IMG/VR virus record: IMGVR_UViG_3300042516_005475
Coordinates: 166,048-230,047 of that record
Strand: one strand, 5' to 3'
Length of the DNA: 64,000 nucleotides
Under the pieces are notes generated by a model. It saw only the letters and a program-made list of their open reading frames with translations, did no database searches and had not been told where the DNA came from. Made by a program: the position numbers and the translations under genes. Below, in pieces: positions 1,892-55,134 of this stretch (position 1 is its first letter; the number at the start of each line of letters is the position of its first letter).

Positions 1892-3988
1892 GTGAAGTTT
1901 CAAGATTATCTCATTGAGTCCTGGAAAGATTATAAAGTAAGTAACAGCCCCAAAGTACTTTTGTACGACTTTTACTTGCTTAGTTATCTTTCCTCTCTTA
2001 TTTTAGATCCAGGTACCAGAAAAGATGTTGGTTTAACAGGTGTTGGTTATTCTGGTAAATTCTTTGGAAGAGAAGGTAAAGAGCTCGATGAAGATATTCA
2101 AAACGCACAGAGAAAGCTATTACCATTCTTAGGTAACAAGCTATCTCAGGCTTTATTTTTAGCCGTTTGCGCAGAGCTACGCCATGTATTAGATAGAAAT
2201 CAACAATGGAGTGAGTTTAAGCATACAAAGAACAAAACATTTAGAAACTATATAAGAAACTTAGAGTTCATGAATAATAAAGAACTCAAAGATTTCCAAT
2301 CTAAAAGAAACATAGAAAATCCAAGATTACAGGTTCAAAGCCAAGGTTATAAAACATCTTACCAGGCTGCAAAGAAGTCTATCAAAGAAACAGGTGGCAA
2401 TGTAATTGACTTTGCCAGAATGGCTGCAGACGCCTTTGAAGATTTAAACTGGTCAGCATCATACGGAGGAGATAAGTGGGCTGAAATTGCTAAAGGTTAT
2501 GTAGATTTGCGCCTGGCTCTCAACAATTATAATCCTGAGGCTCCCAGCCCTTCTTCTGAGTCAGCAGAAAGGTTAATTGCTGCTATTGATCATGCATTTG
2601 ATTTAGAGCACAATACTGGTACAGTATTAAACAAAGTAAAGTACTTTGATGTTAAGGGATATGATTGGATTAAGACTGCCTTGGATGATAAGAGAGATGC
2701 TAACATGTATGACATAGCCAAGAAGGCTAGTAGCGACATGAGAAAGCTAGGTCAAGAAGTGTTAAAGGTGGCTGGTATGCAGGATAAGCAGATGAAAAAA
2801 GTACCTGCAGAGGCTGGTATTCCAACAAAGAAAATAAAGCTGGCTGGGTTTACCTCGAAGAAATATGAAGGTGAACATATTAAAGATCTCAGCAGTCTTC
2901 CTATAGGTAGTCTCATAACAGATGATTATAGCGAGTATGTAGCTAAAGTTTTAAATATAAAAAATGCAGAGAAAAAGGTTACGGTTAAATTTATAGCTAT
3001 AAAAAATAAAAATGATGAAAAATGGTTAGGAAAAACTCATAGATATAGTTTTAACTATATTAAAGAAAAATTACACATAGTTAAAAAACAAGATGAGGCT
3101 AATCTCTTAAAAGATTACTTTGTAGATCCTAGTTATAAACCGGAAGTTACTAGCACTTCATCTGCCATAAAAATTGGTGACACAGTAAAAGTTAAGAATA
3201 ATAACATGGAGGGTACTGTAGAATTAATTAATAATGAGGGAGATAATGAAGCACCCTTAGTTCAAATTAAAGTAATTAAAGCTATTCACCCTGAGCTTGT
3301 AGGTATTAAAACCTGGTACCCAGCAGACCATCTTGAGAAGATATCTCCATCAAAGGTAGTTAAGCTACAAGGTTTTGGTAGTAAAAAGCCAGCAAAAAAT
3401 GAGGCATTATTATTTTCAACAGAAATTGAAAGCCCATATATGTTAACTATAGGTTCAATTCTAATTAATATCCATAGTTCTGATCTATATATTGTTCAAA
3501 TGGTTAATGGGCCTGGAAATTATATAAAGATAAAATTAGTTGCATCGAACGACGCTTTGGAGTTTCCTAATTATACTGAACCTGAATTATACAATGGTGC
3601 TACAATTGCGAGAGATTTTAGATTAATAAAAAACAAAGATAAGGAAAGAGCCTTTGCTTCATATGAGTTTATAAAATTATCTTCTGCGAGTAGAGAAGCA
3701 TCTAAGGCTGCCAAGGCAGATGAGCCAGCCCCTAGAGAAAGAGATGAAAATTTAAAAGTTGGTTTTTACTTTGTAATTAATAATGAAACAAACATTGTTC
3801 AAATAACAGCTCTTCCAAGAGGTTATGTTGAATATAAAATAGTAGCAGCTACTAAAAAATATAAAGAGTTGGAAGGTGTTTCTAGCGGTATGCCTAAAGA
3901 TATGTTCATAGATTCAATTGACTTTGCTATTAATCCTAAATCAACTGAATTTAATTACTATATTAGACAATTCAAAAATAAACGTTGA
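1892..3988 (+). CDS. large late protein, putative internal head protein; conserved N-terminal domain plus KOW/SH3-like repeats (paralog of 8767-12267)
   Basis: 698 aa; MKFQDYLIE leader; LYDFY, WSASYGGDKW, IDHAFDLEHNTG shared with 8767; IKIGDTVKVK-type repeats; TAAATA 1881-1886. Confidence 0.65.
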   Translation: MKFQDYLIESWKDYKVSNSPKVLLYDFYLLSYLSSLILDPGTRKDVGLTGVGYSGKFFGREGKELDEDIQNAQRKLLPFLGNKLSQALFLAVCAELRHVLDRNQQWSEFKHTKNKTFRNYIRNLEFMNNKELKDFQSKRNIENPRLQVQSQGYKTSYQAAKKSIKETGGNVIDFARMAADAFEDLNWSASYGGDKWAEIAKGYVDLRLALNNYNPEAPSPSSESAERLIAAIDHAFDLEHNTGTVLNKVKYFDVKGYDWIKTALDDKRDANMYDIAKKASSDMRKLGQEVLKVAGMQDKQMKKVPAEAGIPTKKIKLAGFTSKKYEGEHIKDLSSLPIGSLITDDYSEYVAKVLNIKNAEKKVTVKFIAIKNKNDEKWLGKTHRYSFNYIKEKLHIVKKQDEANLLKDYFVDPSYKPEVTSTSSAIKIGDTVKVKNNNMEGTVELINNEGDNEAPLVQIKVIKAIHPELVGIKTWYPADHLEKISPSKVVKLQGFGSKKPAKNEALLFSTEIESPYMLTIGSILINIHSSDLYIVQMVNGPGNYIKIKLVASNDALEFPNYTEPELYNGATIARDFRLIKNKDKERAFASYEFIKLSSASREASKAAKADEPAPRERDENLKVGFYFVINNETNIVQITALPRGYVEYKIVAATKKYKELEGVSSGMPKDMFIDSIDFAINPKSTEFNYYIRQFKNKR

Positions 3989-4018
3989 TTCTGCATAGAA
4001 CCCCGTTATAATACAGAA

Positions 4019-4411
4019 ATGAGCTATTATCTCTTTTTGGACGATGAACGCTTCCCTCAAGATGTCACTTGGGTGAAGCTCCCACCCCACAACTGGACCA
4101 TTGTTCGCAACTATGCTGACTTTGTGCGAACCATTGAGAACAAAGGTTTGCCTGTGGAAATTGCCTTTGATCATGACTTGGGACACGAGCATTATCAGGC
4201 CTATCATGCCGCTGCTAAGCCTGGACATGGAGTCATTGATTACAGCAGCTTCAAGGAGAAGACTGGTCTCGACTGCGCCAAGTGGCTCATTGAACATTGT
4301 AACGAGAAGAATTTGCCGTTCCCCAAGTATTATGTTCACTCCATGAACCCCATTGGCAAGCAGAATATCATCAACGCTGTCAATTCCTTCAAAAGATATT
4401 TGCAAAAGTAG
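4019..4411 (+). CDS. cyclic-phosphate-processing receiver (cREC-type REC) domain protein
   Basis: LFLDDER.P, IAFDHDLG, TGLDCAKWL, VHSMNPIG motifs of this stand-alone receiver family. Confidence 0.8.
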   Translation: MSYYLFLDDERFPQDVTWVKLPPHNWTIVRNYADFVRTIENKGLPVEIAFDHDLGHEHYQAYHAAAKPGHGVIDYSSFKEKTGLDCAKWLIEHCNEKNLPFPKYYVHSMNPIGKQNIINAVNSFKRYLQK

Positions 4412-4440
4412 TGGCGTTCCTTCAAAAAAGCAGCCATAAT
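4411..4440 (+). promoter_or_regulatory. early-type promoter driving the ncRNA cluster
   Basis: gtggcg-ttcc...-CATAAT followed by GATTGTAGAAAAT, matching promoters at 26128, 27200 and 27485. Confidence 0.65.
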
Positions 4441-4554
4441 GATTGTAGAAAATTTAGAACGGTAGTAACGTTCAACAGGTGCTGACAATACGTAGAAAAA
4501 GATAGTGTTGGCTAAGTGCGAGTTGTAGTGCCTCCAGCCTGTGTTCTTTTCAAT

Positions 4555-4873
4555 GCGATCGTAGCTCAACGGTAGAGCATCGGCCTTTAATAGGAGCGCT
4601 TATAGAGTGATCTATAAGATGAACCGAGCCATATGCGGGGACCTCCTTAGAGCCTTGAGTACCGTAAGGTAAAAATCTCAAGGATTGGACAATCCGCAGG
4701 AAACCAGTAGATTAGTACGCTGTTGGTCATAAATTGGGATCCTCAGAGACTTTACGCTTGGCATCTCTAAAAGAGATGATGATAAAGTCCAGACTACAAC
4801 GGAAACGGCTAGTGAAAACTAGAGTAGTAAGTTAAGCCGGGTGTTGTGGATTCGAATTCCACCGGTCGCACCA
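4555..4873 (+). tRNA. trnK: tRNA-Lys(UUU) interrupted by a group I intron; exons 4555-4587 and 4832-4873
   Basis: Acceptor GCGATCG/CGGTCGC, D arm GCTC/GAGC, anticodon stem TCGGC/GCCGG, spliced loop CT-TTT-AA, T arm GTGGA-TTCGAAT-TCCAC, encoded ACCA end. Confidence 0.9.
4588..4831 (+). ncRNA. group I intron, 244 nt, no ORF (IC3-like)
   Basis: P ATGCGGGGAC 4633, Q AATCCGCAGG 4691, R CCTCAGAGACTTTA 4741, S GATGATAAAGTCC 4778; P7 GACTTTA/TAAAGTC; P3 CCGAGC/GCTTGG; P1 CTT/GAG; terminal G 4831. Confidence 0.92.
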
Positions 4874-4972
4874 TATTTGCCAACAGGGCTCAGCTTGATG
4901 CTTTGGACAGATAACAAAGTCTGATAGAGAGGCTAGTGCAGAAAATCCTGTATAAACTGCACATTAATTTTT

Positions 4973-5047
4973 CGGCAAGAGTCCTGATCAGACATGGTAA
5001 AGTGCCTGCAGAGGGCACGAGGCAGGTTCAAGTCCTCCATCTTGCCG
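4973..5047 (+). ncRNA. tRNA-like structured RNA without a normal anticodon arm
   Basis: CGGCAAG/CTTGCCG stem, TGGTAAA D-loop-like segment, GTGCCT/GGGCAC hairpin, AGG-TTCAAGT-CCT T-arm. Confidence 0.6.
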
Positions 5048-5070
5048 TTCAATTTAGTTCTTTTACATTT

Positions 5071-5162
5071 GAGTTGGAGCTGTATCCGCAAGGACAGCAT
5101 GGTGTTAGTGAAAGCATTGGAAATGCAGTCTTTCACCGGACTACGACGGTTCCATCCAACTC
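5071..5162 (+). ncRNA. structured RNA with the same architecture as 4973-5047
   Basis: GAGTTGG/CCAACTC, GCAA-tetraloop hairpin, ATGG/CCAT, GTGAAAG/CTTTCAC. Confidence 0.55.
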
Positions 5163-5169
5163 TTTAAAT

Positions 5170-5311
5170 TTATCTGTAGCTCAGCGGTAAGAGCAGAGTT
5201 CCTAACTATGGGTAAAGCCCTTAAAAATCTTATGTTAGGTCGTAAAATTGCCTTGTACTGATATTTTACAAGTTGTAAAAGTAGCCGTTGGTTCGATTCC
5301 AACCAGATGAA
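5170..5311 (+). ncRNA. tRNA-like RNA with a ~90 nt structured segment replacing the anticodon/variable region
   Basis: Acceptor TTATCTG/CAGATGA, TA-GCTC-AGCGGTAA-GAGC D arm, GTTGG-TTCGATT-CCAAC T arm; middle has CCTAAC/GTTAGG and CTTGTA/TACAAG. Confidence 0.7.
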
Positions 5312-7729: not shown

Positions 7730-8746
7730 ATGGAACGTAAACTTGCTAGTGTTCGTAAGATTCAAGAAATTAAGCTCATCGAAGGTGCTGACAAGATTTG
7801 CGCCTACCGAGTTGATGGTTGGTGGGTTGTAGATAGTATTAATAAGTATAATGTTGGTGATCTTGTGGTCTACTACGAGATTGATAGCTTTCTACCAATC
7901 ACTCCTCAATTTGAGTTTCTCCGCAAGTCTTCATTCAAGAAGATGGGTGAACGTGAAGGCTTTAGGCTCAAGACTATTAAGCTCAAGGGCCAGCTCAGCC
8001 AAGGTCTCTTGACTAAAATTCCAATTGGTCTCATTGTACCTCCTAAGGAAAATGATGACATGACTGAGTTGCTCGGCATTATCAAGTATGAGCCTCCTAT
8101 TCCTGCTGAGCTAGCTGGTGAGATCAAGGGTTCGTTCCCTAGCTTCATCCCTAAGACTGATGAGGTTCGTATTCAGAACTTTGAAAGGGAAGTTGGGGTT
8201 TCTATCGCTAATGAGCGAGTTTACGCTACTGAGAAGGTTGATGGTACTAGCTTTACTTGTTATGTTAACAATGGTGAGTTTGGTGTTTGTGGTCGCAATT
8301 GGGAGTTGAAGGAGACTCAAGGTAACTCTCTTTGGCGAATGGCTAACAAGCTCAATCTTCGTGAGAAGCTCTTGAGTCTCAATCTTAACATTGCCTTGCA
8401 GGGTGAGTTGTTTGGTAGTGGAATTAATGGTAATTGGTACAAGCTCAATGATCACCGACTCATGTTCTTTACTGGATATGATATTGATAATCAAAAGCGA
8501 TTGCAGTTTAATGAGTTAATGAACTTGTTGGATAGTTTGCAGTTGGAAAGTGTTCCTGTTATTGATTATATTGCTACTATTCCAGATGGTACTATGGCTG
8601 AGATCGTTGAGTGGTCTTTGTTGTATGCTGAGTCTGAGAGTAATATTAATGCTGCTGTAGAGAACGAAGGTGTTGTTATTCGTGGTCTTGAGAAGGAGTT
8701 TAGCTTCAAGGCTATTAGTAACAAGTGGCTCCTTAGTGAAAAGTAA
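7730..8746 (+). CDS. RNA ligase (DRB0094/Rnl5-like, N-terminal OB domain)
   Basis: MERKLAS...IEGADKI OB domain; FIPKTDEVRIQN; TEKVDGTS; LQGELFG; EGVVIR; SFKAISNKWLL. Confidence 0.88.
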   Translation: MERKLASVRKIQEIKLIEGADKICAYRVDGWWVVDSINKYNVGDLVVYYEIDSFLPITPQFEFLRKSSFKKMGEREGFRLKTIKLKGQLSQGLLTKIPIGLIVPPKENDDMTELLGIIKYEPPIPAELAGEIKGSFPSFIPKTDEVRIQNFEREVGVSIANERVYATEKVDGTSFTCYVNNGEFGVCGRNWELKETQGNSLWRMANKLNLREKLLSLNLNIALQGELFGSGINGNWYKLNDHRLMFFTGYDIDNQKRLQFNELMNLLDSLQLESVPVIDYIATIPDGTMAEIVEWSLLYAESESNINAAVENEGVVIRGLEKEFSFKAISNKWLLSEK

Positions 8747-8766
8747 GGAGAGTTAATAAATATTCA

Positions 8767-11700
8767 GTGATGACACTGAGCAATTTCTTAACCGAGGCAG
8801 CAGTAAATTACAAGATTGGTAGTGGTAACCCAGAGAAGATGCTCTATGACTTTTATGTCTTGAGCTTCATCTCTACCATTAACTTAACACCTGAGAAGGC
8901 CAAGACTGGAACCTTTGGAGATCTTGGATTCCAGGGTGGGTTTCTCGGTAAATCTGATAGAGTCAAGGAGGACATTGAGTACGCTCAAGATGTCCTCCTT
9001 CCTGTGTTAAAAGAGAAGCTAGTAAAAGGTTTGTTTGTATCTATCTGTGCTGAAATCAGACACATAAAAGATAGACCACAAAGCTATAAAGACACACCAT
9101 TAGCAACATCCAAGGTATTCAGAGACTACTATCGCAATTATACTTTAATAGATAAAAGTTTACCAAAAGAGTTTGAGATAAAGAGATTAAGAGAGCCTAA
9201 AAGCGCTATTCCAAAGTCTGAAGCTTACAAGAGATCCTATCAGGCGGCAACAAAGGCTATTAAAGACACAAATTCTACTCCATATGAGTTTGTTCAGATG
9301 TGTGAATATGCCTTTAAGAACATGTCATGGGCTGCTAGTTACGGTGGTAAGAACTGGGCTGCTATTTGCGCTGGGTACAGATTGTTAGTAGATTCTAAGT
9401 CAAAGGATCAGGTATCTGTAGCTATTGACCATGCATATGACCTTGAGCATAACACAGGTGCGGCTCTTAACAAGGTAAAGGATTTCTACATTACTGATAA
9501 AAATGGTAGAGAAGACTTTGATTGGATGGGCAAAGCATTGGATCTCAAGCGCGACGCTAAGTCCATGAACAAGCTCATTGACAAGTGTAGCGGTGATATG
9601 AAGAGATTAGCCTTGCAGGCTATGGCCTTATCTCCAATTGACTACATGAAGAAGAAGACTCCAGCTCCAGAGACTGTGATGCAGCAAACAGCATCTAAAG
9701 TAGGTGGAGAGTACTTAAATGCCTTTAATGAAGGAGCACCTAAGAAGTATAGAACAAAAGAAACTAAAAAGGAAGAGAAGGCTGATTTAAGTGAAGTAAA
9801 GGTAGTTCCAGGCCCTAAGCATGGATTAACAGCAGTAACCAAATATCAAGAAGATAATGTTTATTATGATGAGTATTTAAAAACCTATGTGTATGTTGTT
9901 AAGAAAGTGCCAGAAACAAAATCTGGAATAATTGTAAAATTAGCTGCTATAACAAAAGAAACCCCTAAAGAGATTTTAAAGAAGCAAATTGATCTACACA
10001 ACAAAGGAAATAATACTTATGTTAGTATCGACATGAACTTATTAAATTTAAGTCCAACAGATTTAGCTAACTTTTTTAATGAGGAAATACCAGTAACATC
10101 AAACGTAACAAAATTTAAATTAGCTCCTGCGCCTAAAGACTCTTCACATGCTCCTTACATTTTTCAAAAAAACAAATATTATTATGATAGTTTTTTAAAT
10201 GTTTATGTAGAGTTTATTAAACCAGACCCTGATTCTAAACTTGGAATAATTGTTTCTTTAGTAGCAGTTACTCCAAATTCTGCTATTTCTCTACTTCAAA
10301 ATAAAATTAAGGCCTATAATAAAGAACATGCTTATTTGAATACCTATGTCGCTGCGGAAAACGACCTTATGGGAGTTAGCCCAAAGGATGAAGAATCCTT
10401 AAAAGCTGCTGTATCTGGTAAGACTCCAATTAAATCACCAGAAGATCAATACGAAAGAGAGGAAAAGCAGTCAAAAGAGTATATTAGCAAGCTAGTACCT
10501 AATGCTCCTATGCCTATCACTGGTAGTAAGGTTAATAAGTTTAGTGATGATAAAATTTATTATGACAGCAAGACAAAGGCTTATGTAAAATATAAACATA
10601 AGAGTGGCTGGACAGATCCTAAAATAATGGAATTGTATGCAACAACATATTTTTCGGATACAGCTTTATTAAAAAGAAAAATTGAACTGTTTAAAAAGGA
10701 ATTTGGTCAAAATAAACAATATGTAGCTGCAATAAAAGATATTATTGAGATTGATGAATCTGATACAAACAAAGTAAAACAAGTAGTAGATGGAGAGAAG
10801 TCTGAGGTTAAGAAGCCTAATTTAGATGTATATTTCGCAAAGTATAAATTTGGTGATAAGGTCTTTTTAGATGTTAAAAAATCTGTATCTGGTCAAGTAA
10901 TAGAGAACTTTTTTGAAGATAATGATGAGTATTACAAAATTAAAGTAATTGATAATGCATCATATACTGGCGCTAGTTCTCCTTATGGAATAGGTAAAAT
11001 CTTTACAAAAACTGCAAAGTATATAGATGACTTAAACCCAAAATACAAAGTAACTGACAGAGTAATTTTAATACAATCCGGTAGTGAAGGTATTATTGTT
11101 CAGACCCCATTCAAGCAAGACGCTACATCTAATTATCTTATTAAGATTACAAAAGCAGGAGAGTCAAATGCCTTTAAAAAAGGAGAAGAAATTGTAGTTA
11201 ATACCAGCCGTATCGCCCCTTTGAAGAGGGAGAATGCTAGCGCAAGAACTAATGCTATTAAGAAGCAGAGTGCTCCAGGTAATATACCGTCAGAGGCCTG
11301 GGATAAAATGAGCGAAAAAGTAAAGAACATCTTTGCTCCATATAAGAAAAACAAAAACACTTCTTATGTTTATTATACTGAGAAAGGAGGCAGACAATTA
11401 GGTTTGTATGGTGTAATTGAAAAATTTTACTACAGTCAGGTTGGCGGTACAGAATTACTTACAGTAGAATTTAGATATTTTGTTTCTGCTGCATCTCAAG
11501 CTTCTTTTACAACAATATCTGAGAATAATTTTAATAAACTACAAGATTACAAATCTGCTTTAGAAAGTGTAAATGATTCACCTCTTTACAATGCTCCTTC
11601 TCAAAACTTAGATTCTGCATTAATGCTAAAAGACTATCAAACTGATATTAATGGAGAGGTATTTTATCATATACCAGCTCAGCAATATGTAAAGGTTAAG

Positions 11701-12267
11701 TCAAAAGGGGCTGGAATTCATACAGGTATATACTTTTCAGTTGTTCCAGTAGCAAAGACTAAATTCACCCCAGCTTATTATACATTTAACTGGGCAGAAA
11801 TAACAGCAACAACTAAAGATTTGCAAGAATTATCTATCAAGGCAATAGAATATTTGAAAAAACACTCTGGTGATATTGTTAAAGAGTTAATGCCAAAAGA
11901 AAACCCAGATGAAGTTAAAACACCTGGAAAAGTAAAGCCTGTTGAGATGAATGCATATGAAAAGGAAATACCTGTTCATTATATAAAGAATGAAGACTTC
12001 TTAGAATTAATTGATGCTCAGGCACTATCTTCTCAGTCTGAAATCAGAAGAGATCAATTTTATTATGATGTTACAACAAAGTTAGTAGTAAGTCCAATAA
12101 CTTCTAAAAAGCAATTTGGTGATGCTAGTAAGACTTTAGATGTAGCACCATATGAAAAGATTTTAATTAACTATTCAGGAGAGAAAACACCTAGAGGAGA
12201 GAAAATTATAGTACCTAAAACAATGTCTGTGTATGTGACTGATTTGCATAAAATCCTAGATTATTAG
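8767..12267 (+). CDS. very large late protein, paralog of 1892-3988, putative internal head protein
   Basis: 1166 aa; MTLSNFLTE leader; LYDFY, WAASYGGKNW, IDHAYDLEHNTG; repeated YYDxxxxxYV and YKxGDxV modules; TAAATA 8757-8762. Confidence 0.65.
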   Translation: MMTLSNFLTEAAVNYKIGSGNPEKMLYDFYVLSFISTINLTPEKAKTGTFGDLGFQGGFLGKSDRVKEDIEYAQDVLLPVLKEKLVKGLFVSICAEIRHIKDRPQSYKDTPLATSKVFRDYYRNYTLIDKSLPKEFEIKRLREPKSAIPKSEAYKRSYQAATKAIKDTNSTPYEFVQMCEYAFKNMSWAASYGGKNWAAICAGYRLLVDSKSKDQVSVAIDHAYDLEHNTGAALNKVKDFYITDKNGREDFDWMGKALDLKRDAKSMNKLIDKCSGDMKRLALQAMALSPIDYMKKKTPAPETVMQQTASKVGGEYLNAFNEGAPKKYRTKETKKEEKADLSEVKVVPGPKHGLTAVTKYQEDNVYYDEYLKTYVYVVKKVPETKSGIIVKLAAITKETPKEILKKQIDLHNKGNNTYVSIDMNLLNLSPTDLANFFNEEIPVTSNVTKFKLAPAPKDSSHAPYIFQKNKYYYDSFLNVYVEFIKPDPDSKLGIIVSLVAVTPNSAISLLQNKIKAYNKEHAYLNTYVAAENDLMGVSPKDEESLKAAVSGKTPIKSPEDQYEREEKQSKEYISKLVPNAPMPITGSKVNKFSDDKIYYDSKTKAYVKYKHKSGWTDPKIMELYATTYFSDTALLKRKIELFKKEFGQNKQYVAAIKDIIEIDESDTNKVKQVVDGEKSEVKKPNLDVYFAKYKFGDKVFLDVKKSVSGQVIENFFEDNDEYYKIKVIDNASYTGASSPYGIGKIFTKTAKYIDDLNPKYKVTDRVILIQSGSEGIIVQTPFKQDATSNYLIKITKAGESNAFKKGEEIVVNTSRIAPLKRENASARTNAIKKQSAPGNIPSEAWDKMSEKVKNIFAPYKKNKNTSYVYYTEKGGRQLGLYGVIEKFYYSQVGGTELLTVEFRYFVSAASQASFTTISENNFNKLQDYKSALESVNDSPLYNAPSQNLDSALMLKDYQTDINGEVFYHIPAQQYVKVKSKGAGIHTGIYFSVVPVAKTKFTPAYYTFNWAEITATTKDLQELSIKAIEYLKKHSGDIVKELMPKENPDEVKTPGKVKPVEMNAYEKEIPVHYIKNEDFLELIDAQALSSQSEIRRDQFYYDVTTKLVVSPITSKKQFGDASKTLDVAPYEKILINYSGEKTPRGEKIIVPKTMSVYVTDLHKILDY

Positions 12268-13407: not shown

Positions 13408-13839
13408 ATGTTCAAAAATAAAGGGTTTACAATATTAGAGATACTCTTAACAGTAGCCCTTTTAGCAACATTAATTGGTGTAGTGTCCTTTAACTTCAAT
13501 AGTTTATCAGATTCTGCTCAATACAAAGAAGCCAAAGAGAATCTAAAGACTCACTTAATAAGTCAGAAGTATAAGGCTGCTTATGAGCAGAAGGAGATTG
13601 AAGTTGATCTGAGTGTGGCAACAAATGATCTTAACATAGTAGATGCCACTAAGATAGTATTCTTCTCTGATGGTTCAGTTGAAGAGAGCTATATAATAGT
13701 AAGCTCTTTAGATGGTAAATATACTAACAAGATAGTAATTAATGTTATAGGTTATGTATCAGAGCAAGATACTTTCGATATTCTACCTATTGAGTCTAAA
13801 GACAGGTTACCGATAGAAAATTATGAAGAGTCTTTTTAA
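13408..13839 (+). CDS. type IV pilin/pseudopilin-like protein
   Basis: KNKG|FTILEILLTVALLATLIGVV: prepilin cleavage site, F+1, E+5, hydrophobic helix. Confidence 0.8.
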   Translation: MFKNKGFTILEILLTVALLATLIGVVSFNFNSLSDSAQYKEAKENLKTHLISQKYKAAYEQKEIEVDLSVATNDLNIVDATKIVFFSDGSVEESYIIVSSLDGKYTNKIVINVIGYVSEQDTFDILPIESKDRLPIENYEESF

Positions 13840-20865: not shown

Positions 20866-20930
20866 AGAAAGGCTTGCCGTTCCTGGCAGGAACCTGTATA
20901 CTTTTTGTAGAAAAATTAATAAATAATTGT

Positions 20931-23434: not shown

Positions 23435-24574
23435 ATGAAGATTACCTACGACACGCTTTATTCTGCCGACAGTAAGAACAACATTCGCATTTGGCGAATG
23501 GAACAGGATGGTGCGCAGTACCACACTACTTCAGGCTTGGAAGATGGTAAGCAGGTCACTACAGAGTGGTCTACTGCTGAGCCTAAGAACACTGGCAAGG
23601 CTAACGCTACTACTGCTACTCAGCAGGCCACTCTAGAGATTGAATCTCAATACGCTAAGAAGCTCAAGAGCGGTTATTTCCGAAGCAAGAATGATGTCAA
23701 TAAGATTACCTTTATTGAGCCTATGCTTGCTCAACCACTACATAAGCTCGCTAAGCAGCCTGACTTTGCGAATGAGAAGTGGGGCTTGCAATGTAAGTTC
23801 AACGGTAATCGATGCATTGCTACTAAGAATGGATTGTTCTCTCGTACTGGAGAGAAGTACTATAGTGTCCCACACATCGAGGGAGCTCTTAAGAGTTTCT
23901 TTGAGGTATGTCCAGCAGCTGTGCTAGATGGAGAATTGTTTAACAATCATCTCCGTACTCAGCTTAACGAGATCAACAAGCTTATTCGTAAGTCTAAGCA
24001 TATTAGCCAAGAAGACTTTGCTAAGAGTGAAGAGCTTGTTAAGTTCTACATCTATGATGGATACAATTTCTGTGGTTATAATGAGCTTTCTGCCTATCAT
24101 CTTCGCAAGAAGGCAATTGATAACTTCTTGCTCACTTGTAAGCTCAAGTGTTTGGCTAGTGTAGAGACTATTGCTATCAATTCTACTGATCAGATGAAAG
24201 AAGAGTTTAATAGACTCTTGGCTGATCAACAAGAGGGCGCTATTTTGCGTTGGATGGATGCTCCTTACGAGCACAAGCGCTCTAAGTACCTTGTTAAGGT
24301 CAAGGTTGATGATGATAGCGAGGCTACTATTGTCGACATTACTGATGGAGATGGTAACTGGAAGGGTGCTGCTACTAATGTTACATTGAACTGGAAGGGT
24401 AAGGTGTTTGATGGTGTGTTCAAGGGCAAGTATGAGAAGCGAGCTGATATCCTCAAGGATAAGAAGAATTGGATTGGCAAGGAGGTTACCTTTCTCTACA
24501 TGGGTCTCACCGGACTCGGCACCCCGAATTTCGCCCGAGTCGACCCTGACAACTGCTTCAAAAATGACCGCTGA
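23435..24574 (+). CDS. ATP-dependent DNA ligase
   Basis: IEPMLAQ, KFNGNRC (KxDG-type motif I), LDGELF, EGAILR, KRSKYLVKVK, C-terminal OB fold. Confidence 0.88.
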   Translation: MKITYDTLYSADSKNNIRIWRMEQDGAQYHTTSGLEDGKQVTTEWSTAEPKNTGKANATTATQQATLEIESQYAKKLKSGYFRSKNDVNKITFIEPMLAQPLHKLAKQPDFANEKWGLQCKFNGNRCIATKNGLFSRTGEKYYSVPHIEGALKSFFEVCPAAVLDGELFNNHLRTQLNEINKLIRKSKHISQEDFAKSEELVKFYIYDGYNFCGYNELSAYHLRKKAIDNFLLTCKLKCLASVETIAINSTDQMKEEFNRLLADQQEGAILRWMDAPYEHKRSKYLVKVKVDDDSEATIVDITDGDGNWKGAATNVTLNWKGKVFDGVFKGKYEKRADILKDKKNWIGKEVTFLYMGLTGLGTPNFARVDPDNCFKNDR

Positions 24575-29337: not shown

Positions 29338-30468
29338 TTGAGTCTATTAAAAAGGCTATACCTCAACCTTACTTAAGGCAGAAGATTTCTCTTGTTACAA
29401 GTATTAAACTAAATCAAAGTTGTGATATTGAGCAGGACTTGTCTACTAATATTAGAGACAATATTTGTTCTCATTTGTTCTGGGAACTTAAGAGAGAAGA
29501 TTCTAATTTCTTGCATAATGTTAATATCTATTAAAAATGCTATTCATGAGGCAGAGTCTCGGGCTTACTTTAGGCAGAACCTATCTGTTAATAACAATAT
29601 TAGAATGTATCTTAATTCTAATATTAAAAGAGACTTGTGTACTAATATCAGAGACAATCTTCATTCTCCTTTGTTCTGGGAATTGATAAGAGACTTCGAT
29701 TAATCTCAACATTAATGAATACTGCTAAAGAGTTTAGTGCTAATCATAAAATTCATACCAGACTCTATACGGATTTGCGGTTGAGTATGTTTGATGTGTT
29801 TAATTTTAATTGTTCACCAACGAGTAAAGAACTCTTAAAAAGTATATCTGATAATCTTAGACCCATTAACTTTATTAGCAATCAGATATATAGTAACTTA
29901 AATATTGAAAAATATGAATGAGATATCAATATCTATTAATAAAGAAATAATTGAAATGACTAATCAAGTTGATGTTATGATTGAAATGGCAAAAGATTCT
30001 GACAAATTAGAGAGTGAGAATTTTATTGCAAAACTAAACAATATTCCTTGGCCTGAGCCATTAGATCCTCCAACTACTACTGCTGAGGCAGAAGCCAGAC
30101 AAAGAAGGTTTGAAGATGATATCAATTAATAAAGAAATAGGTAAATACATTAATGGTTTAAAGGATTAATATGGAAGAATGTAAAGCTGCTGTACCTACG
30201 AAGAAAAACATGGGGCACTTCATACGCAAGTGGTATTATGGAGCTCTCTTTTGGATGTATTTGAACATATGGTGTCGGTATTGTTATCGCCATGTTATGC
30301 GATGGATGCATAAGTTTAATTTTCACCACACCACTGTAGTTAATATTGTAGAAGAAAAGAATGAATTGACAGGTAAACATCAACGCAAGCATTTGTGGTG
30401 TCAATGGTGTGGATTGCGAGGCGACATTTTAAAGTTTAATCATGATGAGTAATTGAATAAATAATATT

Positions 30469-31706
30469 ATGTTCAACGAATTAGCTAACTCTCTTATTCA
30501 AGAGAGTTTCCACCCAATCAGAGCTAAAGAGCGTATAAAAAAGTTAATTGAGACCCCTCAAGGAGCATTCCAATATGCTTTAAAAATTAAAAAAGGTAGA
30601 GCACCAGAAGTTGAGCCTATTATTTTAAAAAAAGCCTCTACAGCTATTCAATATGCTGCATTTATTATTAAAGGTAGATGGCCAGAGGCAGAGCCAATAA
30701 TATTAAAAAATGCTGCTACAGCTTACAATTATGCGCTTAATGTAATAGACGGTAGATGGCCAGAAGCTGAGCAAGTAATATTACAAAGCAATAATGCTTC
30801 TATCGCGTCATCTTATGCTGCGTTTGTAATAAATGGTAGATGGCCAGAGGCTGAACCAATAATTAAAGATAATCCTAGCGCTTCTCTCTCCTACGCAAAA
30901 TATTTACTAAAGGAAAGATTCCCAGCTGGAGAAAAAGCAATAAAAGAGAGCCCCGCACATGCAAAAGACTATGCTATTTTTGTTCTAAGAGATAGATGGC
31001 CTGAAGCTGAGCCTACTATTAAAAAGGATGAAGAACAATGGGAAAGTTATAAAGATTACTTTGGAATAGAGGAAGAAGATTAATATGCCATTAAAACCTA
31101 TTAATACTAAACCTAGAATAGATAAACTAAAGAAATGGCCTTATCATGCATATTATATTGCTAAAGATATTAAAAAAGGCAGATGGCCAGAAGCTGAACC
31201 TTATATCAAAAACGATGCCAGATGGGCATATTTCTATGCCAGAGACATCATCAAAGGCAGATGGCCAGAGGCTGATTCTGTGATCATGAATTCCAGATGG
31301 GCTGTAGCATACCTCACCATTATTTAATATGCCACTAAAACCTCTTAAAACTAAAGAAAGATTAAATGCTAAGATAGCTGAGATAAAATCATTACAACAT
31401 CGTTATAGTGCTGCTTCGGTCGCTAGAATGTCTTTTGAATTAGCTAATGGTATTGAAATACGCATACCAGAACTAGAACCCTTTATATTTAAAGATCATT
31501 GGGCTGCATATGAATATGTTAGATCAGTAGTAAAGAAACCTTTGCCAGAAGCTGAACCAATCATTCTAGATGACCCATGGACTGCCTTTTATTATGCTGT
31601 TAAAATTAAAAAAGAGAGATGGCCAGCAGCAGAACAAGTACTAAAAAACAACCAGTTAGAAGGTTTTTGGAACAAATATAAAGAAAAATTCAATATTAAA
31701 GACTAA
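30469..31706 (+). CDS. three tandem WPEAEP helical-repeat genes (30469-31083, 31085-31327, 31329-31706)
   Basis: ~24 aa unit A..YA..VIKGRWPEAEP.I; TAA-T-ATG junctions; TAAATA 30458-30463. Confidence 0.75.
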
Positions 31707-31788
31707 TTTGCCAGCCTCGCTGAATAAATCTGCCGCAAAAAAAAGCTTGAACTGCCTGTGAAAAGTTATAGAGATAATAAATATAAAC

Positions 31789-32878: not shown

Positions 32879-32946
32879 AAGAATATTTATGAAATTTTCC
32901 TAAAAAAGCTTGAACTGCCTGTGAAAAGTTCATATCATAAGTAGGA

Positions 32947-33313: not shown

Positions 33314-34222
33314 ATGGACCTCAACATTACCAAATCCGACTTCATCCGCGTTGCCGACGTCAAGATCAGCGATATCTTTTATCGCCGTCTTCAGACCGGC
33401 ATTACTAAGATCGACGAGTTCATGAGCGGTGGTTTCTTGCCTGGCTCTAGCTTTACTCTGGCTGCTTCGCCTGGTACTGGTAAGACTACTCTTATGCTGC
33501 AGATCCTTGAGTCTCTTGCTAAGCAAGGCTACAAGGTTGGTTACATCTCCGGTGAGGAGAATATTATGCAGGTTGCCTATACCTGTCAGCGTATCAAGGT
33601 TGAGAACGTTATGGTTCGCAACGAGACTAACATTAACGAGATTAAGAAGGTGATGCAAGACTTCGATCTTATCATCATTGACAGCTTTCAGTGCTTGACT
33701 GGCGATGTTAATATGAGCTCTGTTGAGCGTGAGAAGTATATCCTCAAAGAGCTGTTGCCTGAGGCTAAGTCTACTGAGTGTGTCATTGGCTTCATTATGC
33801 ATATGACTAAGGATGGTAAGAACATGAAGGGTTCTACTTTGGTTCCGCATTCTGTTGACGCTAACCTTACTCTCGATATTGACGAAGAAGGTGATGACGG
33901 CACTCGCGTTCTTGGTACTCAGAAGAATCGCTTTGGCTCTCTCAACCAGGTCAGCTTGTACATGGGTTCTACTGGTTATGACTTTGATGCCAAGATTGAG
34001 GTGTTCAATGCTGAGAAGAAGGCTGCCCCTAAGAAGGACCGCAAGGCTGCTGACATGGAGAAGATTATGAATCTCGGCAATGAGTTTACTATTGAGCAGG
34101 TTATGCCTATTGCTAACGGAGACTATTGCCGCGCTCAGTACTTGCTGCGTAACTTGCTCAGTAGCAACAAGCTGACTAAGAGCGGTCGCGGCAATGAGGC
34201 TAAGTTTCAGGTCATTAACTAA
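33314..34222 (+). CDS. radA: RadA/Sms-like RecA-family ATPase lacking N-terminal Zn finger and Lon-like domain
   Basis: GGFLPGS, ASPGTGKTT, YISGEE, IIIDSFQ, PHSVD, KNRFG. Confidence 0.85.
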   Translation: MDLNITKSDFIRVADVKISDIFYRRLQTGITKIDEFMSGGFLPGSSFTLAASPGTGKTTLMLQILESLAKQGYKVGYISGEENIMQVAYTCQRIKVENVMVRNETNINEIKKVMQDFDLIIIDSFQCLTGDVNMSSVEREKYILKELLPEAKSTECVIGFIMHMTKDGKNMKGSTLVPHSVDANLTLDIDEEGDDGTRVLGTQKNRFGSLNQVSLYMGSTGYDFDAKIEVFNAEKKAAPKKDRKAADMEKIMNLGNEFTIEQVMPIANGDYCRAQYLLRNLLSSNKLTKSGRGNEAKFQVIN

Positions 34223-34255: not shown

Positions 34256-34657
34256 ATGAAACGTAATAACAAAGCTGGTTTTACTCTCGTTGAGCTGATG
34301 ATTAGTGTCGTTATCTTTTTCATCGTTATCTCAACCATTATTGGTATTAGTGGCATTATTATTGGCAAGAGCGACGGTAAGCGAGTTGGTACTATTACTA
34401 AATTCAGTCACAAGGGCTTGTTTGTTAAGAGCTACGAAGGCGAACTCAATATGGGTGGTTTTCGCGATCGTACTGACAGTGAAGGTAAGCATAGCGTTGT
34501 TGGCAACGTTTGGGAGTTTAGCTGCAGCAATCCTGAGGTTGCTAAGAAGTTGGATAATTTGCTTGGCAAGCAAGTCGTTATTCAGTATCATCAGAGCTTC
34601 AAAGGGTTCAAGATGGATACTAGCTATGATGTTGTTAGCGTAGAGGAAGTGAAATAA
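34256..34657 (+). CDS. prepilin-type N-terminal domain fused to an OB-like domain
   Basis: KAG|FTLVELMISVVIFFIV; G.RVG.ITKFSHKG..VKSYEGEL C-terminal domain. Confidence 0.75.
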   Translation: MKRNNKAGFTLVELMISVVIFFIVISTIIGISGIIIGKSDGKRVGTITKFSHKGLFVKSYEGELNMGGFRDRTDSEGKHSVVGNVWEFSCSNPEVAKKLDNLLGKQVVIQYHQSFKGFKMDTSYDVVSVEEVK

Positions 34658-40965: not shown

Positions 40966-42260
40966 ATGTCTCTTAAACCATTAAAGACTAAAGAGCGATT
41001 AGATGCCTTGAAGAACAATCCAAAGGCATTATTAGCTTTTTGCAAAGATGTATTAAAGGCTCCATGGCCAGAGGCTGAACCATACATCTTAAAAGATACT
41101 ATGGTTGCTATGCATTATGCCTATCATGTTAAACAGAAGCTATGGCCTGAGTTAGAAAATATACTAGATGGTACTAGATATATGCCAATGTATAACTGGA
41201 ACATGAGATATTTTACCTATTAATATGCCTCTTAAATCAATCAAACTAAAAGATAGATTACAAAAGAAAAAGAAAGATCCTTTTGAAATCATTAATTTTT
41301 GCAGATACACTATAATGGGTCGCTGGCCAGAAGTTGAACCTTTTTTACTAAAACATAAAGATCCTTTTTGGGCATTGTTATATGCCAGAGACATCATCAA
41401 AGGGCGATGGCCAGAAGCAGAACCTCTTATCATGAAAGAGGCATACATGGCATACAAGTACGCTAGAGATGTAATCAAAGGACCTTGGCCTGAAGCCGAG
41501 AAACATATTAAACGAGATGCTGCTGCCTGGAGCGAATATACAAAAAAGGTACTAAACAACTCATAACATATGCCCCTAAAACCAATAAAGACTAAAGAGA
41601 GATTTGAAAATCTTATAAAAACTCCTAGAGGTGTTGTTACATATGCTGAGCATAAAAAAACGCCTGTACCTGATCTTGAGCATGTAATATTACTAGATGA
41701 CTTGGCAATCTATTGGTATGCCTATTATGTTTTACACCGCAGATGGCCAAAGGGAGAACAGATATTGTTGAGAGGAGCTTTTCCTATATGGGGACCAAAT
41801 GCCTATGTTCTAAGCAGATATGCAGAAAATATAATAAAAAATCGTTGGCCAGAGGCTGAACCATTTATTAAAAAAGATTCATCAGAATGGGAAAATTACT
41901 CAAACAACTTTAACATTCAAGACTAATATGCCCCTCAAACCAATAAAGACTAAAGAAAGATTAGAACAAGTAAAGAAAGATGCAGGATTAGCATATTATT
42001 TTGCTAAAGATGTAATCAAGGATCGTTGGCCAGAAGTTGAACCTATTATTATGCAGGATGCCTGGTGGGCATGGAAGTATGCTGTAGACGTTATTAGAGC
42101 ACCATGGCCAGAGGCTGAACATGTTATCTCTAAAAAATCTATGCCTGCTTATAATTATGCTGTATTGGTAATAAAAGATAAATGGCCACCTGGAGAAAAA
42201 GCTATTAATAAATTAGCCTACTCCAAAAAAGGATATAAACATTTTGTAGACAATTTATAA
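40966..42260 (+). CDS. four tandem WPEAEP helical-repeat genes (40966, 41225, 41570, 41928)
   Basis: M(P/S)LK(P/S)(I/L)K.K(E/D)R N-termini, RWPEAEP.I repeats, TAAATA 40954-40959. Confidence 0.75.
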
Positions 42261-47999: not shown

Positions 48000-49360
48000 G
48001 GTTTCTTATATTTATCTTTTACAGATGGTGTTTGTGGCGTCTTTTTAATATCTGCTGCTGGGTAGCCTGTTGGTTTAATTGTTGGTTGTTGAGAGGCTTC
48101 AACTAATTCAAACTGTGTTACACCACCTGGCATTCTAATAGCATATAGTTTCTTGCCTGATAATGGAACTCTTAATACTATTCTATTTCTCTTTTGGGCA
48201 ATGGCTGGTAATTGTAAAAAGTAATTGATCCACTTGGGCAATACCTTAGTATTATGAGCACCAAAGTATCTGAACTCAACTGTTTTATATTTGGCAAAGG
48301 CCTTTATGTTAGTACCAGCATAACGATCAGCGCTATTAATTGTTTCTAATAGTTCTTTATTAGACATCTGAAAAGGCTTTGGTTTATCCTGCCCACCATA
48401 TTTAACTCTTAAAATAACACTAATTAAGTTCTTTGAAACTTCATTTCTCAATTTTGCAAAGCCTAAATCTCTTCTTACCTTAGAGGCTTTTAAATCTGAC
48501 TCTACTTGCTCTTCATCTACTAGTGTTGTCATCGCCAGTAAATCGAAAGCATCAAAGTCTTTGGGTGTTCCAATGTGTATATGTAAACCAGTACCACTAT
48601 CGGTAATCTGATGGTCTACGAAGGCTGAGACCAAGTCTACTTGATCCATATTCTCTCTCTTTAAAATAGGAGATCTAATCTCTGTATTTGGACCGTCTGG
48701 ACCAATTGTCCACATATTAGGATCATATCGTTCATCTCTTTTGATGCTAATAGATTTGTTAAGAACATTAATAGCCTCATAGCAGCTAGCTTCTGGGTCT
48801 ACATCAACTTCAACTTCTACAAAGTCTTGCCAATTGTTATCAGCGATATACTCAAAGAATTCGTCTGTATTATCGTATTTGTCTCTTCTTTCCCAATAGG
48901 CGTAATTGTAATCAACATCACTTAATTTTTCTTGATATTCTTTTAATTCTCTTTCGTAGTCTTCTTCATTATTGTATGCGCTTAAATTTGGCTCAGCGTA
49001 CACATCAGTAAATGTGTCTTGAGACATTGGTCCATAGATATCATCATATCTGCTTATATCCCCTCTTCCGTATCTTTTCCATTGGATAGCAGCATCATTT
49101 CTTTTTTCTTCTAGCCAAGACAAATATTCAGCCTCTAAGTCTCTATTGCGACCACCTCTCCAAGAACCATTCAAGGCTTCTAATATATCGTCTTTCTCAA
49201 CTTCTTTGCTTGTTGTATTCGGTAGATATTCATACTCTACTCCGAATGTACCTTCTGGGATAGAGTGCTGCTCAGCCATTTTATTCTTGATCTGCTCTAT
49301 CTTTGCAAATGGAACTGGGCCCTCTTGTAGCAGGCTATTATATAAGTCTTTAAACTTCAC
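47996..49360 (-). CDS. amidoligase (COOH-NH2 ligase type 2)-like protein with acidic insertion
   Basis: TFGVEYEY, EIRSPIL, GTGLHIHIG, YKTVEFRYF; GTG start. Confidence 0.75.
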   Translation of the reverse strand: MKFKDLYNSLLQEGPVPFAKIEQIKNKMAEQHSIPEGTFGVEYEYLPNTTSKEVEKDDILEALNGSWRGGRNRDLEAEYLSWLEEKRNDAAIQWKRYGRGDISRYDDIYGPMSQDTFTDVYAEPNLSAYNNEEDYERELKEYQEKLSDVDYNYAYWERRDKYDNTDEFFEYIADNNWQDFVEVEVDVDPEASCYEAINVLNKSISIKRDERYDPNMWTIGPDGPNTEIRSPILKRENMDQVDLVSAFVDHQITDSGTGLHIHIGTPKDFDAFDLLAMTTLVDEEQVESDLKASKVRRDLGFAKLRNEVSKNLISVILRVKYGGQDKPKPFQMSNKELLETINSADRYAGTNIKAFAKYKTVEFRYFGAHNTKVLPKWINYFLQLPAIAQKRNRIVLRVPLSGKKLYAIRMPGGVTQFELVEASQQPTIKPTGYPAADIKKTPQTPSVKDKYKKP

Positions 49361-49409
49361 GTAATTATTTATTGCCTTTGGTAGATAGGCCCTTATAATA
49401 CCTCGTAGA

Positions 49410-54165: not shown

Positions 54166-54210
54166 ACAGTTACATATATTTATCGTAGAGGAGAATAAAT
54201 AATTAAGCAT

Positions 54211-55134
54211 ATGAACAGCATTTTCGATGAGTATTACGAAACTTTAATCAAAGAGGCTATTGGTTTGAATGAAATGCCAGTAAGCCGCATTGCCTCTGAT
54301 TTAACATCTTTTAAGCCAAGCAAAGAGCTTGGCTCATATTCAATTACAGATATAACAGGTGAGGATGAAGAAAAAATTAAACAGGTACTTGTTAAGGTTG
54401 GTGAATATGTAATTGACAATCTTAAAGAACCATCTTCTGCTTCAAGAAAAGAGTATCAAGATGTAGTCGCTGAATTTATTAGAAAGGCTATTAATGACGT
54501 ATTCCCCGATTCCAAAAAGGCTTCAGGAGGCAAGCCTTTTACTGCCAGAGATTACTATGCTGCAAGAGCTATTATCAAGGCTTTCGAAGACCAGAATATT
54601 ATTAACACCAATGATACTGGTGGTAAGATTGAAAAAGGCTCTGTTGAAAAAGATGAGCTACCTCAAACAGTAGCTGACATTACTCAGGACGTTTCAAATG
54701 AAGTAGAGGCTAAGGTACAAGATGATTTGGATGATACCAAGGAAAAGCAAGAAGAGACTCAAGTAGAAGTTGGTGAGATAGGTTTAGTCAAAGGTGATAA
54801 GTTTGAACCAACAGCAGTATATTCTGTTGATGAGACATCTGATAAAGAAAATCTAAGCCCATTAGAGAAGTATGCTCTTGATTATGTTGAACCTGAAACA
54901 AGTGGCATTGATATTGTAAAGATGCTTAAAAACTCAATTAAGCTCAGAAACAAAGAAAACGAAATCAGAGATCTATTAGATTCTCTTGTGAAGAAAGGTA
55001 TTTTAGCCAAGACTGGTGATGATGAAGATTCTGGCAGAGGAGTTTCAAAGACTGGAGATGATTCAGTTGAGGATATATTAAAGGGCATGGGGCCAAGAGA
55101 GAATCCCGAAACTGGAGTTCTAGGCGATTTATAA
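54211..55134 (+). CDS. acidic late protein, putative internal head protein
   Basis: TAAATA 54196-54201; ...YETLIKE leader; D/E-rich. Confidence 0.55.
   Translation: MNSIFDEYYETLIKEAIGLNEMPVSRIASDLTSFKPSKELGSYSITDITGEDEEKIKQVLVKVGEYVIDNLKEPSSASRKEYQDVVAEFIRKAINDVFPDSKKASGGKPFTARDYYAARAIIKAFEDQNIINTNDTGGKIEKGSVEKDELPQTVADITQDVSNEVEAKVQDDLDDTKEKQEETQVEVGEIGLVKGDKFEPTAVYSVDETSDKENLSPLEKYALDYVEPETSGIDIVKMLKNSIKLRNKENEIRDLLDSLVKKGILAKTGDDEDSGRGVSKTGDDSVEDILKGMGPRENPETGVLGDL

Follow-up and report, generated by a model that had tools for sequence, protein, structure and literature searches.

The 64-kb stretch of DNA analyzed here (the window) is the final part, positions 166,048 to 230,047, of a 230,047-bp IMG/VR phage record, and it encodes a series of late proteins whose N termini resemble the capsid-targeting sequence (CTS) of phage T4. 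By analogy with T4, we consider it probable that these genes belong to a T4-type capsid-targeting and processing system which has been expanded about tenfold and which would deliver a large protein set together with the DNA. The T4 CTS is a short N-terminal propeptide of 10 to 19 amino acids (aa) that ends in (L/I)-x-E, in which residues 4 and 7 determine targeting and residues 8 and 10 determine processing (PMC9026906). At those positions, the leaders described here show conserved aromatic or hydrophobic residues and Glu. Throughout, W followed by a number denotes the window position of an open reading frame (ORF), and positions labeled "genome" refer to the whole 230,047-bp record.

The window belongs to an uncultured T4-like myovirus from lake water. 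The record is a circular permutation cut within the major capsid gene, and joining its end to its start restores a single unbroken gp23-type ORF. The capsid module has the order gp20-gp21-gp22-gp23 and is syntenic with that of T4 (portal gene upstream of the protease gene, scaffold and capsid genes after it). By protease, the closest cultured phages are marine cyanomyoviruses, at only ∼42% identity. Near-identical DNA is common in lake-water metagenomes (81 to 100% of sampled words in the one 3.8-kb stretch searched, W45700 to 49500), and on the transcript side only the assembled contigs of one metatranscriptome contain part of this stretch (7% of its sampled words).

The initial annotation had listed about a dozen leader-bearing ORFs, and all twelve are present with the N termini it gave. 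We regard the leader calls as strong for four of them (arrows mark the predicted cut). A 698-aa late protein (W1892; 1892 to 3988, +) begins MKFQDYLIE↓SWKDY, with the leader codons at 1892 to 1918 and TAAATA at 1881 to 1886. Its 1165-aa paralogue (W8770; 8767 to 12267, +), a member of the same PHROG 20946, begins (M)MTLSNFLTE↓AAVNY and has a GTG codon one codon upstream (8767), with TAAATA at 8757 to 8762, 5 nt before this GTG. The third is a 454-aa Amidoligase_2 protein (W47996; 47996 to 49360, −) with the leader (GTG)KFKDLYNSLLQE↓GPVPF behind TAAATA at 49366 to 49371, which, like W1892, starts with GTG, and the fourth is a 307-aa acidic protein (W54211; 54211 to 55134, +) with the leader MNSIFDEYYETLIKE↓AIGLNE and TAAATA at 54196 to 54201.

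Five further calls are good. These are a 248-aa J-domain and zinc-ribbon protein (W32132; 32132 to 32878, −; MRLLSSLIDE↓VLFG, TAAATA at 32884 to 32889), a 204-aa protein (W30469; 30469 to 31083, +; MFNELANSLIQE↓SFHP, TAAATA at 30458 to 30463), an 88-aa protein with a Pro-rich tail (W47733; 47733 to 47999, −; MKDNFDDLVNNLLSKTLFE↓APAAP, TAAATA at 48009 to 48014), a 383-aa protein of a large uncharacterized phage family with the minimal leader MKLKE↓ALDLP (W46580; 46580 to 47731, −), and a 275-aa protein (W45751; 45751 to 46578, −; MKNQSINSLMFE↓GYVNH) which is the last of a four-gene leader operon and whose relative at 68% identity has the leader MKNKSINGLMFE↓SYVNH. In W30469 a WPEAEP-repeat domain begins near residue 26, homologues align only from residue ∼25, and in other large phages this domain lies inside bigger proteins beginning MKLSLILE, MRYHEFLIE and similar. 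The call is moderate for a 101-aa protein (W31789; 31789 to 32094, +; MSNINDPIFE↓AYRD, TAAATA at 31778 to 31783), which has a paralogous leader, MNSNINNSIFE↓AYVK, at genome 136235. It is weak for an 89-aa late protein (W20931; 20931 to 21200, +; TAAATA at 20920 to 20925), whose putative 19-aa leader MPYNNDFNRISKSYTSLKE↓N is without comparative support and is thus weak to moderate, and for a 147-aa basic protein (W21197; 21197 to 21640, +) with the putative leader MSIILE↓AVKE. The latter is the weakest of the twelve, with a very short leader, no promoter of its own, and a start that overlaps the stop of the preceding gene. By sequence alone W20931, W21197, and W46580 are individually weak, W46580 being rescued by the family evidence described below, and MKLKE and MSIILE are shorter than any T4 CTS.

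In general form, the leaders consist of Met, an aromatic residue at position 3 or 4, often Asp, Asn, or Glu next, a hydrophobic pair, and x-Glu, over 5 to 19 residues in total; the residue that follows the Glu is mostly Ala, Gly, or Ser. The statement that these genes lie mostly behind TAAATA was accurate: the box stands 5 to 9 nt before 9 of the 12 starts (W1892, 8770, 20931, 30469, 31789, 32132[−], 47733[−], 47996[−], and 54211), and the other 3 (W21197, 45751[−], and 46580[−]) lie directly behind the preceding leader-bearing gene in the same operons. "About a dozen" was an undercount. At least one more candidate is found in the window, a 70-aa basic protein (W55148; 55148 to 55360, +) with the leader MDINKKIDAYLKE↓GRPVD, whose 53% orthologue keeps the junction (MTVQDIIDSYIKE↓GREID), and ∼20 more lie elsewhere in the genome. 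On the basis of promoter plus leader pattern, these latter candidates include genome 16457, 16681, 24578, 48996, 51650, 55750, 111801, 124460, 131423, 131835, 136235, 149225, 152548, and 163537.

The promoter element in question, ATAAATA(A/T)TT(A/G)(T/C) (e.g., window 1881 to 1894, 30458 to 30471, and 49360 to 49371), defines a larger gene set. TAAATA occurs 2 to 20 nt upstream of the start in 64 of the 280 genes called across the whole genome, and in these 64 the distance from the end of the box to the start is exactly 5 nt in 35 genes and exactly 6 nt in 10. A Shine-Dalgarno (SD)-like motif was found for only 1 of the 64, compared to 36 of the 216 other genes. Late mRNAs would thus be leaderless or nearly so, since the box lies 5 to 6 nt from the start and an SD motif is almost never present; three of the box genes start with GTG, an unexpected codon for leaderless translation. 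A distant 197-kb relative shares this box layout, and the box is spaced from the start by 4 nt in a 511-kb phage, 19 to 31 nt in cyanophage S-SM1, and 13 to 29 nt in T4. TAAATA-N5-ATG also precedes the genes for portal, tail sheath, tail tube, sheath stabilizer, baseplate wedge, TerL, and protease, and we therefore take the box to be a late or virion promoter element. The portal, sheath, tube, sheath stabilizer, baseplate wedge, and TerL proteins begin MA, MG, or MP without an aromatic leader, and the leader class consists almost wholly of proteins with no Pfam or PHROG match. By their N termini, the late genes thus appear to fall into two classes, with and without a leader.

Across all 280 N termini, [LI]xE with the Glu at positions 5 to 20 occurred 80 times, versus an expectation of 42 derived from windows within these proteins. 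Among the 64 promoter-proximal genes it was present in 34, versus 12.9 ± 3.1 in shuffles that permuted residues 2 to 22 within each protein (n = 2,000), and a T4-CTS-like regular expression (regex: M, 1 to 3 residues, F/Y, an optional residue, D/N/E, 1 to 11 residues, a hydrophobic residue, x, E) matched 20, versus 1.6 ± 1.3; none of the 2,000 shuffles attained the observed 34 or 20. The 216 other genes gave 46 [LI]xE matches (34.9 expected) and 5 regex matches (4.2 expected). The regex had been composed after inspection of the data, and a leave-one-out weight matrix anchored on the Glu was added as a less circular check; it recovered 14 of the 64 promoter-proximal genes (0.7 expected) and 1 of the 216 others (2.5 expected). 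The separation it achieved was significant but weak, owing to the variable length of the leaders. After subtraction of chance matches, about 20 real leaders are left among the promoter-proximal genes, with several more downstream in the same operons, and we estimate from these patterns that the leader class comprises roughly 20 to 35 genes genome-wide.

Such an excess might in principle arise without any relation to the capsid, from a generic amphipathic first helix or from a first-codon constraint of SD-less, near-leaderless late mRNAs. The short distance between box and start and the rarity of SD motifs could expose the 5′ coding sequence to unusual selection, AT-rich codons encode the residues of the leaders (Lys, Asn, Phe, Tyr, Ile, Leu [TTA], Glu [GAA], and Asp [GAT]), and many T4 proteins without a CTS match the regex. 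We nevertheless consider this explanation improbable. The signal is abolished both by the composition-preserving shuffle and by a composition-only null built from pooled late N termini, which gives an equally low expectation; the leader pattern is therefore not a consequence of AT-rich early codons. It is also missing from canonical virion genes of identical promoter layout. Furthermore, the Glu and the residue after it (P1′) are conserved among homologues that differ in leader length, and fused homologues carry the junction, which has the form hydrophobic-x-Glu (h-x-E), internally and far from any start codon.

This conservation of the Glu despite insertions and deletions in the leader is apparent from the alignments of five families, those of the 698/1165-aa, amidoligase, J-domain, 307-aa, and 383-aa proteins. 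For the 698/1165-aa family, the comparison comprised 111 database homologues and 18 IMG/VR loci. Its leaders vary widely (MKFQDYLIE, MKLQDFLVE, MNYRDFFLIE, MKYTDYYSHLNE, MIYLKDLLLLTE, MLKFKDLHMKLLSE, MRFRAYLE, and others), yet each closes with one invariant Glu before (S/G/A/K)(W/F)..Y, and across 15 diverse homologues E9 of the 698-aa protein is invariant, with the insertions and deletions falling within the leader. In amidoligase homologues with identities as low as ∼30%, h-x-E is still followed by [AGV][VI]P[FI] and closes leaders of 5 to 16 residues (MKFKDLYNSLLQE, MTRLELKKLIRELLDE, MIKLKDILLE, MLFSEFLE). In the J-domain family, a homologue at 77% identity begins MKTLNDLINE↓VLFN, with 5 of 10 leader residues different and the motif kept, and a relative at 60% begins MSNLLNE↓T. 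The 51% orthologue of the 307-aa protein (MNTSIFDETFNKLITE↓AIGLNE) has a one-residue leader indel and retains the junction.

The most telling case for a cut site, in our reading of the alignments, is the 383-aa family, which comprises 470 clusters. In its single-domain members, 4 to 11 leader residues precede a conserved E↓A(L/I/M)D or E↓MAF. An N-terminal extension of ∼75 to 90 residues, homologous to the 88-aa neighbor W47733, is present in many longer members; it comprises a leader, then EAP, a stretch rich in Pro, and PKPKA..DVELF. In these fused proteins the same h-x-E↓A/M junction is internal, at the domain boundary. In the phage studied here and in one relative, the gene is split exactly at this junction. 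The junction is thus both an internal site and a gene boundary, which is what a processing site predicts.

A protease of matching type is encoded by the same genome. A Peptidase_S77 (T4 gp21-type) prohead protease lies at genome 2215 to 2889 (−) (PF03420, 115 bits versus a cutoff of 27), and its residues H79 and S132 align with T4 gp21 H85 and S140, which we take, from the gp21 structure, to be the catalytic residues. The protease itself begins MPHRLLVE↓TP (T4, MNEPQLLIE↓TW), a motif kept in relatives, and the gp22 scaffold homologue (genome 1161 to 2066, −) begins MSALIE↓KLKE↓, likewise kept in relatives. The Delta-like N-terminal piece of the gp23 homologue ends ...ENQERWCIEE↓SGAN, its T4 counterpart being ...FLTE↓AEIG; the C-terminal part of this gp23-type major capsid protein (PF07068) is at window 63419 to 64000 (−), the gene crossing the record junction. 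Because its own protease, scaffold, and capsid homologues keep h-x-E sites, the specificity of the protease, a cut after Glu with Leu, Ile, or Val two residues before, seems to be kept.

By analogy with T4, the leader would bind the gp22-based scaffolding core during prohead assembly, the gp21-type S77 protease would then cut after the leader Glu, and the mature protein would stay in the head and leave with the DNA at infection. The leader-bearing late genes are mostly small cassettes, each with its own ATAAATA box 5 to 6 nt before the start. From T4 we infer core binding, cleavage, copy number, ejection, and the role of the proteins as cargo. The Glu sites might instead be activation switches: the protease would cut the proteins in the cytoplasm late in infection, turning them on or off with no packaging involved. 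No part of the leaders is conserved better than the cleavage-type motif, and MKLKE and MSIILE are maybe too short for T4-like determinants at positions 4 and 7. On the other hand, gp21-type proteases are core components that act within the prohead, as established for T4 (PMC9026906), and the aromatic and hydrophobic positions on which T4 relies for targeting are found in most leaders, which makes such a switch very improbable. The interpretation given by the initial annotation is partly supported: every computational test able to overturn its capsid-targeting reading went in favor of that reading, with virion presence, cleavage, and injection being what we infer from it.

Other phages served as controls. 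In T4, the regex matched 16 of 258 proteins and recovered IPI (with a 19-residue leader), IPII, and IPIII (MKTYQEFIAE↓A). A 54-codon ORF of T4 (NC_000866, 18966 to 19130, −) begins MKTFKEFIKE↓D, very close to the CTS of the internal proteins (IPs). The distant 197-kb relative (G002) had 72 promoter-proximal genes, of which 30 contained [LI]xE (13.9 ± 3.0 expected) and 9 matched the regex (2.0 ± 1.3 expected). A 192-kb phage (G005; IMG/VR 3300005077_000004) with a homologue of the 698-aa-family N-terminal domain (N-domain) showed little or no excess.

Several observations weigh against the interpretation of these N termini as capsid-targeting leaders. The T4 matches also included 12 proteins, among them lysozyme, thymidylate synthase, RNA ligase, and portal, which, as is established for T4, are not capsid targeted; a leader-like N terminus alone is therefore unspecific, and individual calls carry a real risk of being false positives. 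What is specific here is the concentration of the pattern in one promoter class, and even there 13 of the 34 [LI]xE matches are expected by chance. Cyanophage S-SM1, from the closest cultured clade, showed no regex excess (3 versus 3.6 expected); having no leader class, this phage, for which a virion proteome is published (PMC3037559), was used as the negative control. A 511-kb phage with a homologue of the 698-aa-family N-domain gave a weak signal, and we claim no generalization to megaphages. Because S-SM1, the 192-kb phage, and the 511-kb phage are weak or null, the leader class is lineage restricted. Cultured phages yielded no nucleotide match to 11 kb of the window (megablast) and no match to the amidoligase (tblastn), nor was the 698-aa N-domain found in cultured phages, its sole tblastn match being an uncultured 595-kb phage. 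Several families are conserved past the Glu, which could be part of a conserved N-terminal helix, and the divergence of leaders and mature parts did not differ consistently (74% versus 63% pooled identity, heterogeneous).

Four candidates were also rejected. W51889 (LNLNE) is not a leader because its Glu is not conserved, being replaced by Gln or Ser in relatives; this counterexample demonstrates that the conservation test is able to fail. The tail sheath (MPTQTIE), an SNase homologue, and a ClpB-like ATPase, whose Clp_N domain starts from residue 15, were set aside as probable false positives.

As for the leader-bearing proteins themselves, the J-domain and amidoligase assignments made earlier were correct. 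W32132 matches PF00226 (DnaJ) at residues 42 to 86 (42.8 bits versus a cutoff of 27.8; 5.5e−11), contains ...QYHPDTSG... with the HPD motif, and has an additional zinc ribbon. W47996, a predicted enzyme, matches PF12224 (Amidoligase_2) at residues 225 to 369 (28.5 bits versus a cutoff of 22) and PHROGs 2443 and 7469, both annotated as amidoligase enzyme; an amidoligase-only query of IMG/VR returned nothing beyond one identical fragment. One small leader-bearing protein is a DUF6321 protein. For most of the others, Pfam and PHROGs were empty with respect to cargo function, a PDB profile search was empty, and an ESM Atlas feature search was uninformative. No leader-bearing protein except the protease matched the T4 proteome (BLASTP, 280 proteins), none matched an internal protein in Pfam or PHROG, and most have no homologue in G002, G005, or T4. 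In the whole genome, 68 of 280 proteins have any match in T4 or in G002 and G005, which are ∼190- to 197-kb phages carrying 698-aa-family homologues.

The 698/1165-aa proteins are basic (pI ∼9) and combine a novel helical N-domain with repeated small beta modules; in the 698-aa protein, a conserved all-alpha N-domain (∼residues 10 to 295) is followed by Lys-rich modules. Their variable parts contain no toxin or enzyme domain, with only weak SH3-like beta-module matches, and the 698-aa N-domain matched neither MuF nor any solved fold. Structure prediction of mature parts, which had been proposed as a check, was performed with AlphaFold2 (AF2) for two families only, those of the 698-aa and 383-aa proteins. 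It agreed with the predicted cut insofar as the model from the 698-aa family alignment (predicted template modeling score [pTM], 0.73) has residues 1 to 8 disordered and an all-alpha fold from residue 10, right after the Glu. The 383-aa domain adopts a confident fold (pTM, 0.89). Neither model has a named structural relative: Foldseek against PDB gave nothing below E = 0.08, and a search of BFVD returned one uncharacterized phage protein.

Among close relatives of the 698-aa protein, the N-terminal ∼320 residues are 95 to 100% identical and the C-terminal parts differ in length (600 to 880 aa), which looks like modular swapping or a change in repeat number in a probable head-internal protein. 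In G005, the 698-aa-family N-domain is found at residues ∼387 to 644 of a 1928-aa protein (161565 to 167351, −), the gene for which adjoins the prohead protease gene. Two small leader-type ORFs at genome 56030 to 56475 (MKFDDIINQILSE... and MKNFISFKAFFE↓AS) are absent from a ∼96%-identical contig (G006, 65100 to 65771), so that a putative cargo gene has been gained or lost at the level of strains. A similar turnover between relatives is known for the T4 internal proteins (PMC3012670, PMC9026906).

It could be that the leaders do direct these proteins into the prohead and are cut, and that most of the proteins nonetheless serve in assembly or packing instead of being injected as effectors. They might be parts of the scaffolding core, an inner-body-like mass that organizes the DNA, or precursors of degraded and expelled peptides, as T4 gp22, gp67, and gp68 are. 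The 88-aa W47733 fits this picture, being a leader plus a Pro-rich low-complexity module homologous to a propeptide-like extension, and, like internal proteins that associate with DNA, a number of the mature parts are small and either basic or Lys rich. The 698/1165-aa proteins consist of repeated small beta modules without a catalytic domain, and in one relative the N-domain lies within the 1928-aa protein encoded beside the protease gene. Enzyme-like cargo such as the Amidoligase_2 and J-domain proteins is hard to explain as scaffold, however; well-folded domains of 380 to 450 aa (pTM, 0.89) are unlikely to be degraded to peptides, and the leader-bearing internal proteins of T4 are ejected (PMC3012670). 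As an account of most of the set we therefore consider such a packing role unlikely, and for part of the set a serious alternative to delivery with the DNA.

Compared to known systems, the capsid-targeting system proposed here is closest in form to T4 IPI, IPII, IPIII, and Alt, with which it shares S77 protease, gp22, and gp23 homologues, predicted late promoters, a similar leader form, and cargo that is hypervariable between relatives. It differs in that T4 has 3 or 4 leader-bearing genes compared to ∼20 to 35 here, and in that T4 IPII and IPIII share an identical leader whereas the leaders here differ from gene to gene. Unlike the T4 IPs, the cargo reaches 1165 aa and includes enzyme-like proteins, the genes are scattered single cassettes with TAAATA 5 to 6 nt from the start, the cargo has no sequence similarity to that of T4, and the system is known from genes alone. 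In phiKZ, 201phi2-1, and SPN3US, all with genomes above 200 kb, many head proteins are likewise cut after Glu by a gp21-related protease; phiKZ-type phages deliver a large protein mass with the DNA, and cleavage follows S/A-x-E (PMC9026906, PMC7411985). These phages are not T4-like in organization, they have a small residue instead of Leu or Ile at P3, and their propeptides are often long and multisite, in contrast to the short N-terminal tags described here. MuF-type polymorphic toxins and polyvalent proteins (PMC5512222) resemble the 698/1165-aa proteins in combining a conserved N-module with a C-terminal part that varies between near-identical strains, and differ from them in that the variable parts here have no toxin or enzyme domain. 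The mechanism would be a known one, largely expanded, and of interest mainly for its scale, for the sequence rule, and for the fused or split propeptide family.

Among the other features of the window, an ATP-dependent DNA ligase (23435 to 24574, +), a KaiC/RecA-like ATPase (33314 to 34222, +), and a gp5-like baseplate spike (Phage_base_V; 56229 to 58700, −) were identified. An ORF-poor, GC-richer stretch between a gene for a cyclic-phosphate processing receiver (cREC_REC; 4019 to 4411) and one for an RNA ligase with a PHA02142 OB domain (7730 to 8746, +) contains a group I intron (4577 to 4812, +; Rfam RF00028, 70.9 bits) and a 142-nt match to the tRNA model (5170 to 5311, +; 36.4 bits), which ARAGORN does not call; this stretch may hold a tRNA with an intron or a module for RNA repair. 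Two proteins (13408 to 13839, +, and 34256 to 34657, +) have prepilin-type N termini (PF07963, N_methyl; MFKNKGFTILE..., MKRNNKAGFTLVE...). By this match both are pilin or pseudopilin like, and their L-x-E would stem from the prepilin peptidase motif, not from a capsid leader. A second recurrent N terminus, M(P/S)LKP(I/L)KTKER(L/F), begins all of six small paralogues (31085 to 31327, 31329 to 31706, 40966 to 41223, 41225 to 41566, 41570 to 41926, and 41928 to 42260, all +), two of which are adjoined by WPEAEP-motif repeat proteins of the W30469 family.

Proteins carried in the capsid act ahead of all phage gene expression, and among those of T4 are one that inhibits a host restriction enzyme and another that enzymatically modifies the RNA polymerase of the host. 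The initial annotation had proposed that the cargo is rich in anti-defense or takeover effectors; we regard this role as speculation, because almost all of the cargo is without a recognizable domain or fold. If 20 to 35 proteins are indeed tagged, the genome would be a concentrated source of first-minute takeover and counter-defense functions, nearly all of them without a known fold. Tentatively, as a reading somewhat less likely than not, we suggest that in this freshwater T4-like lineage the CTS has become a general address label by which about a tenth of the proteome, ∼25 to 35 proteins, is packed into the head and passed on together with the DNA; these would include the J-domain and Amidoligase_2 proteins, the 700- to 1200-aa basic proteins with their strain-variable C-terminal parts, and folds without known relatives. 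The system would then parallel, in a T4-type phage, the bolus of ejection proteins of phiKZ, and the split and fused genes of the 383-aa family would be a natural record of where the protease cuts. Fusions to the CTS of T4 IPIII carry foreign protein into the head (PMC9026906), and an address label of this kind would mean that the T4 tag is scalable and can be attached to large enzymes, which is relevant to protein-delivery vehicles based on T4-type capsids. The combination of a late box, an aromatic leader, and h-x-E would then predict the injected proteins of uncultured large phages from sequence, and this sequence rule offers a means to nominate virion-internal proteins in uncultured phages that lie out of the reach of proteomics.

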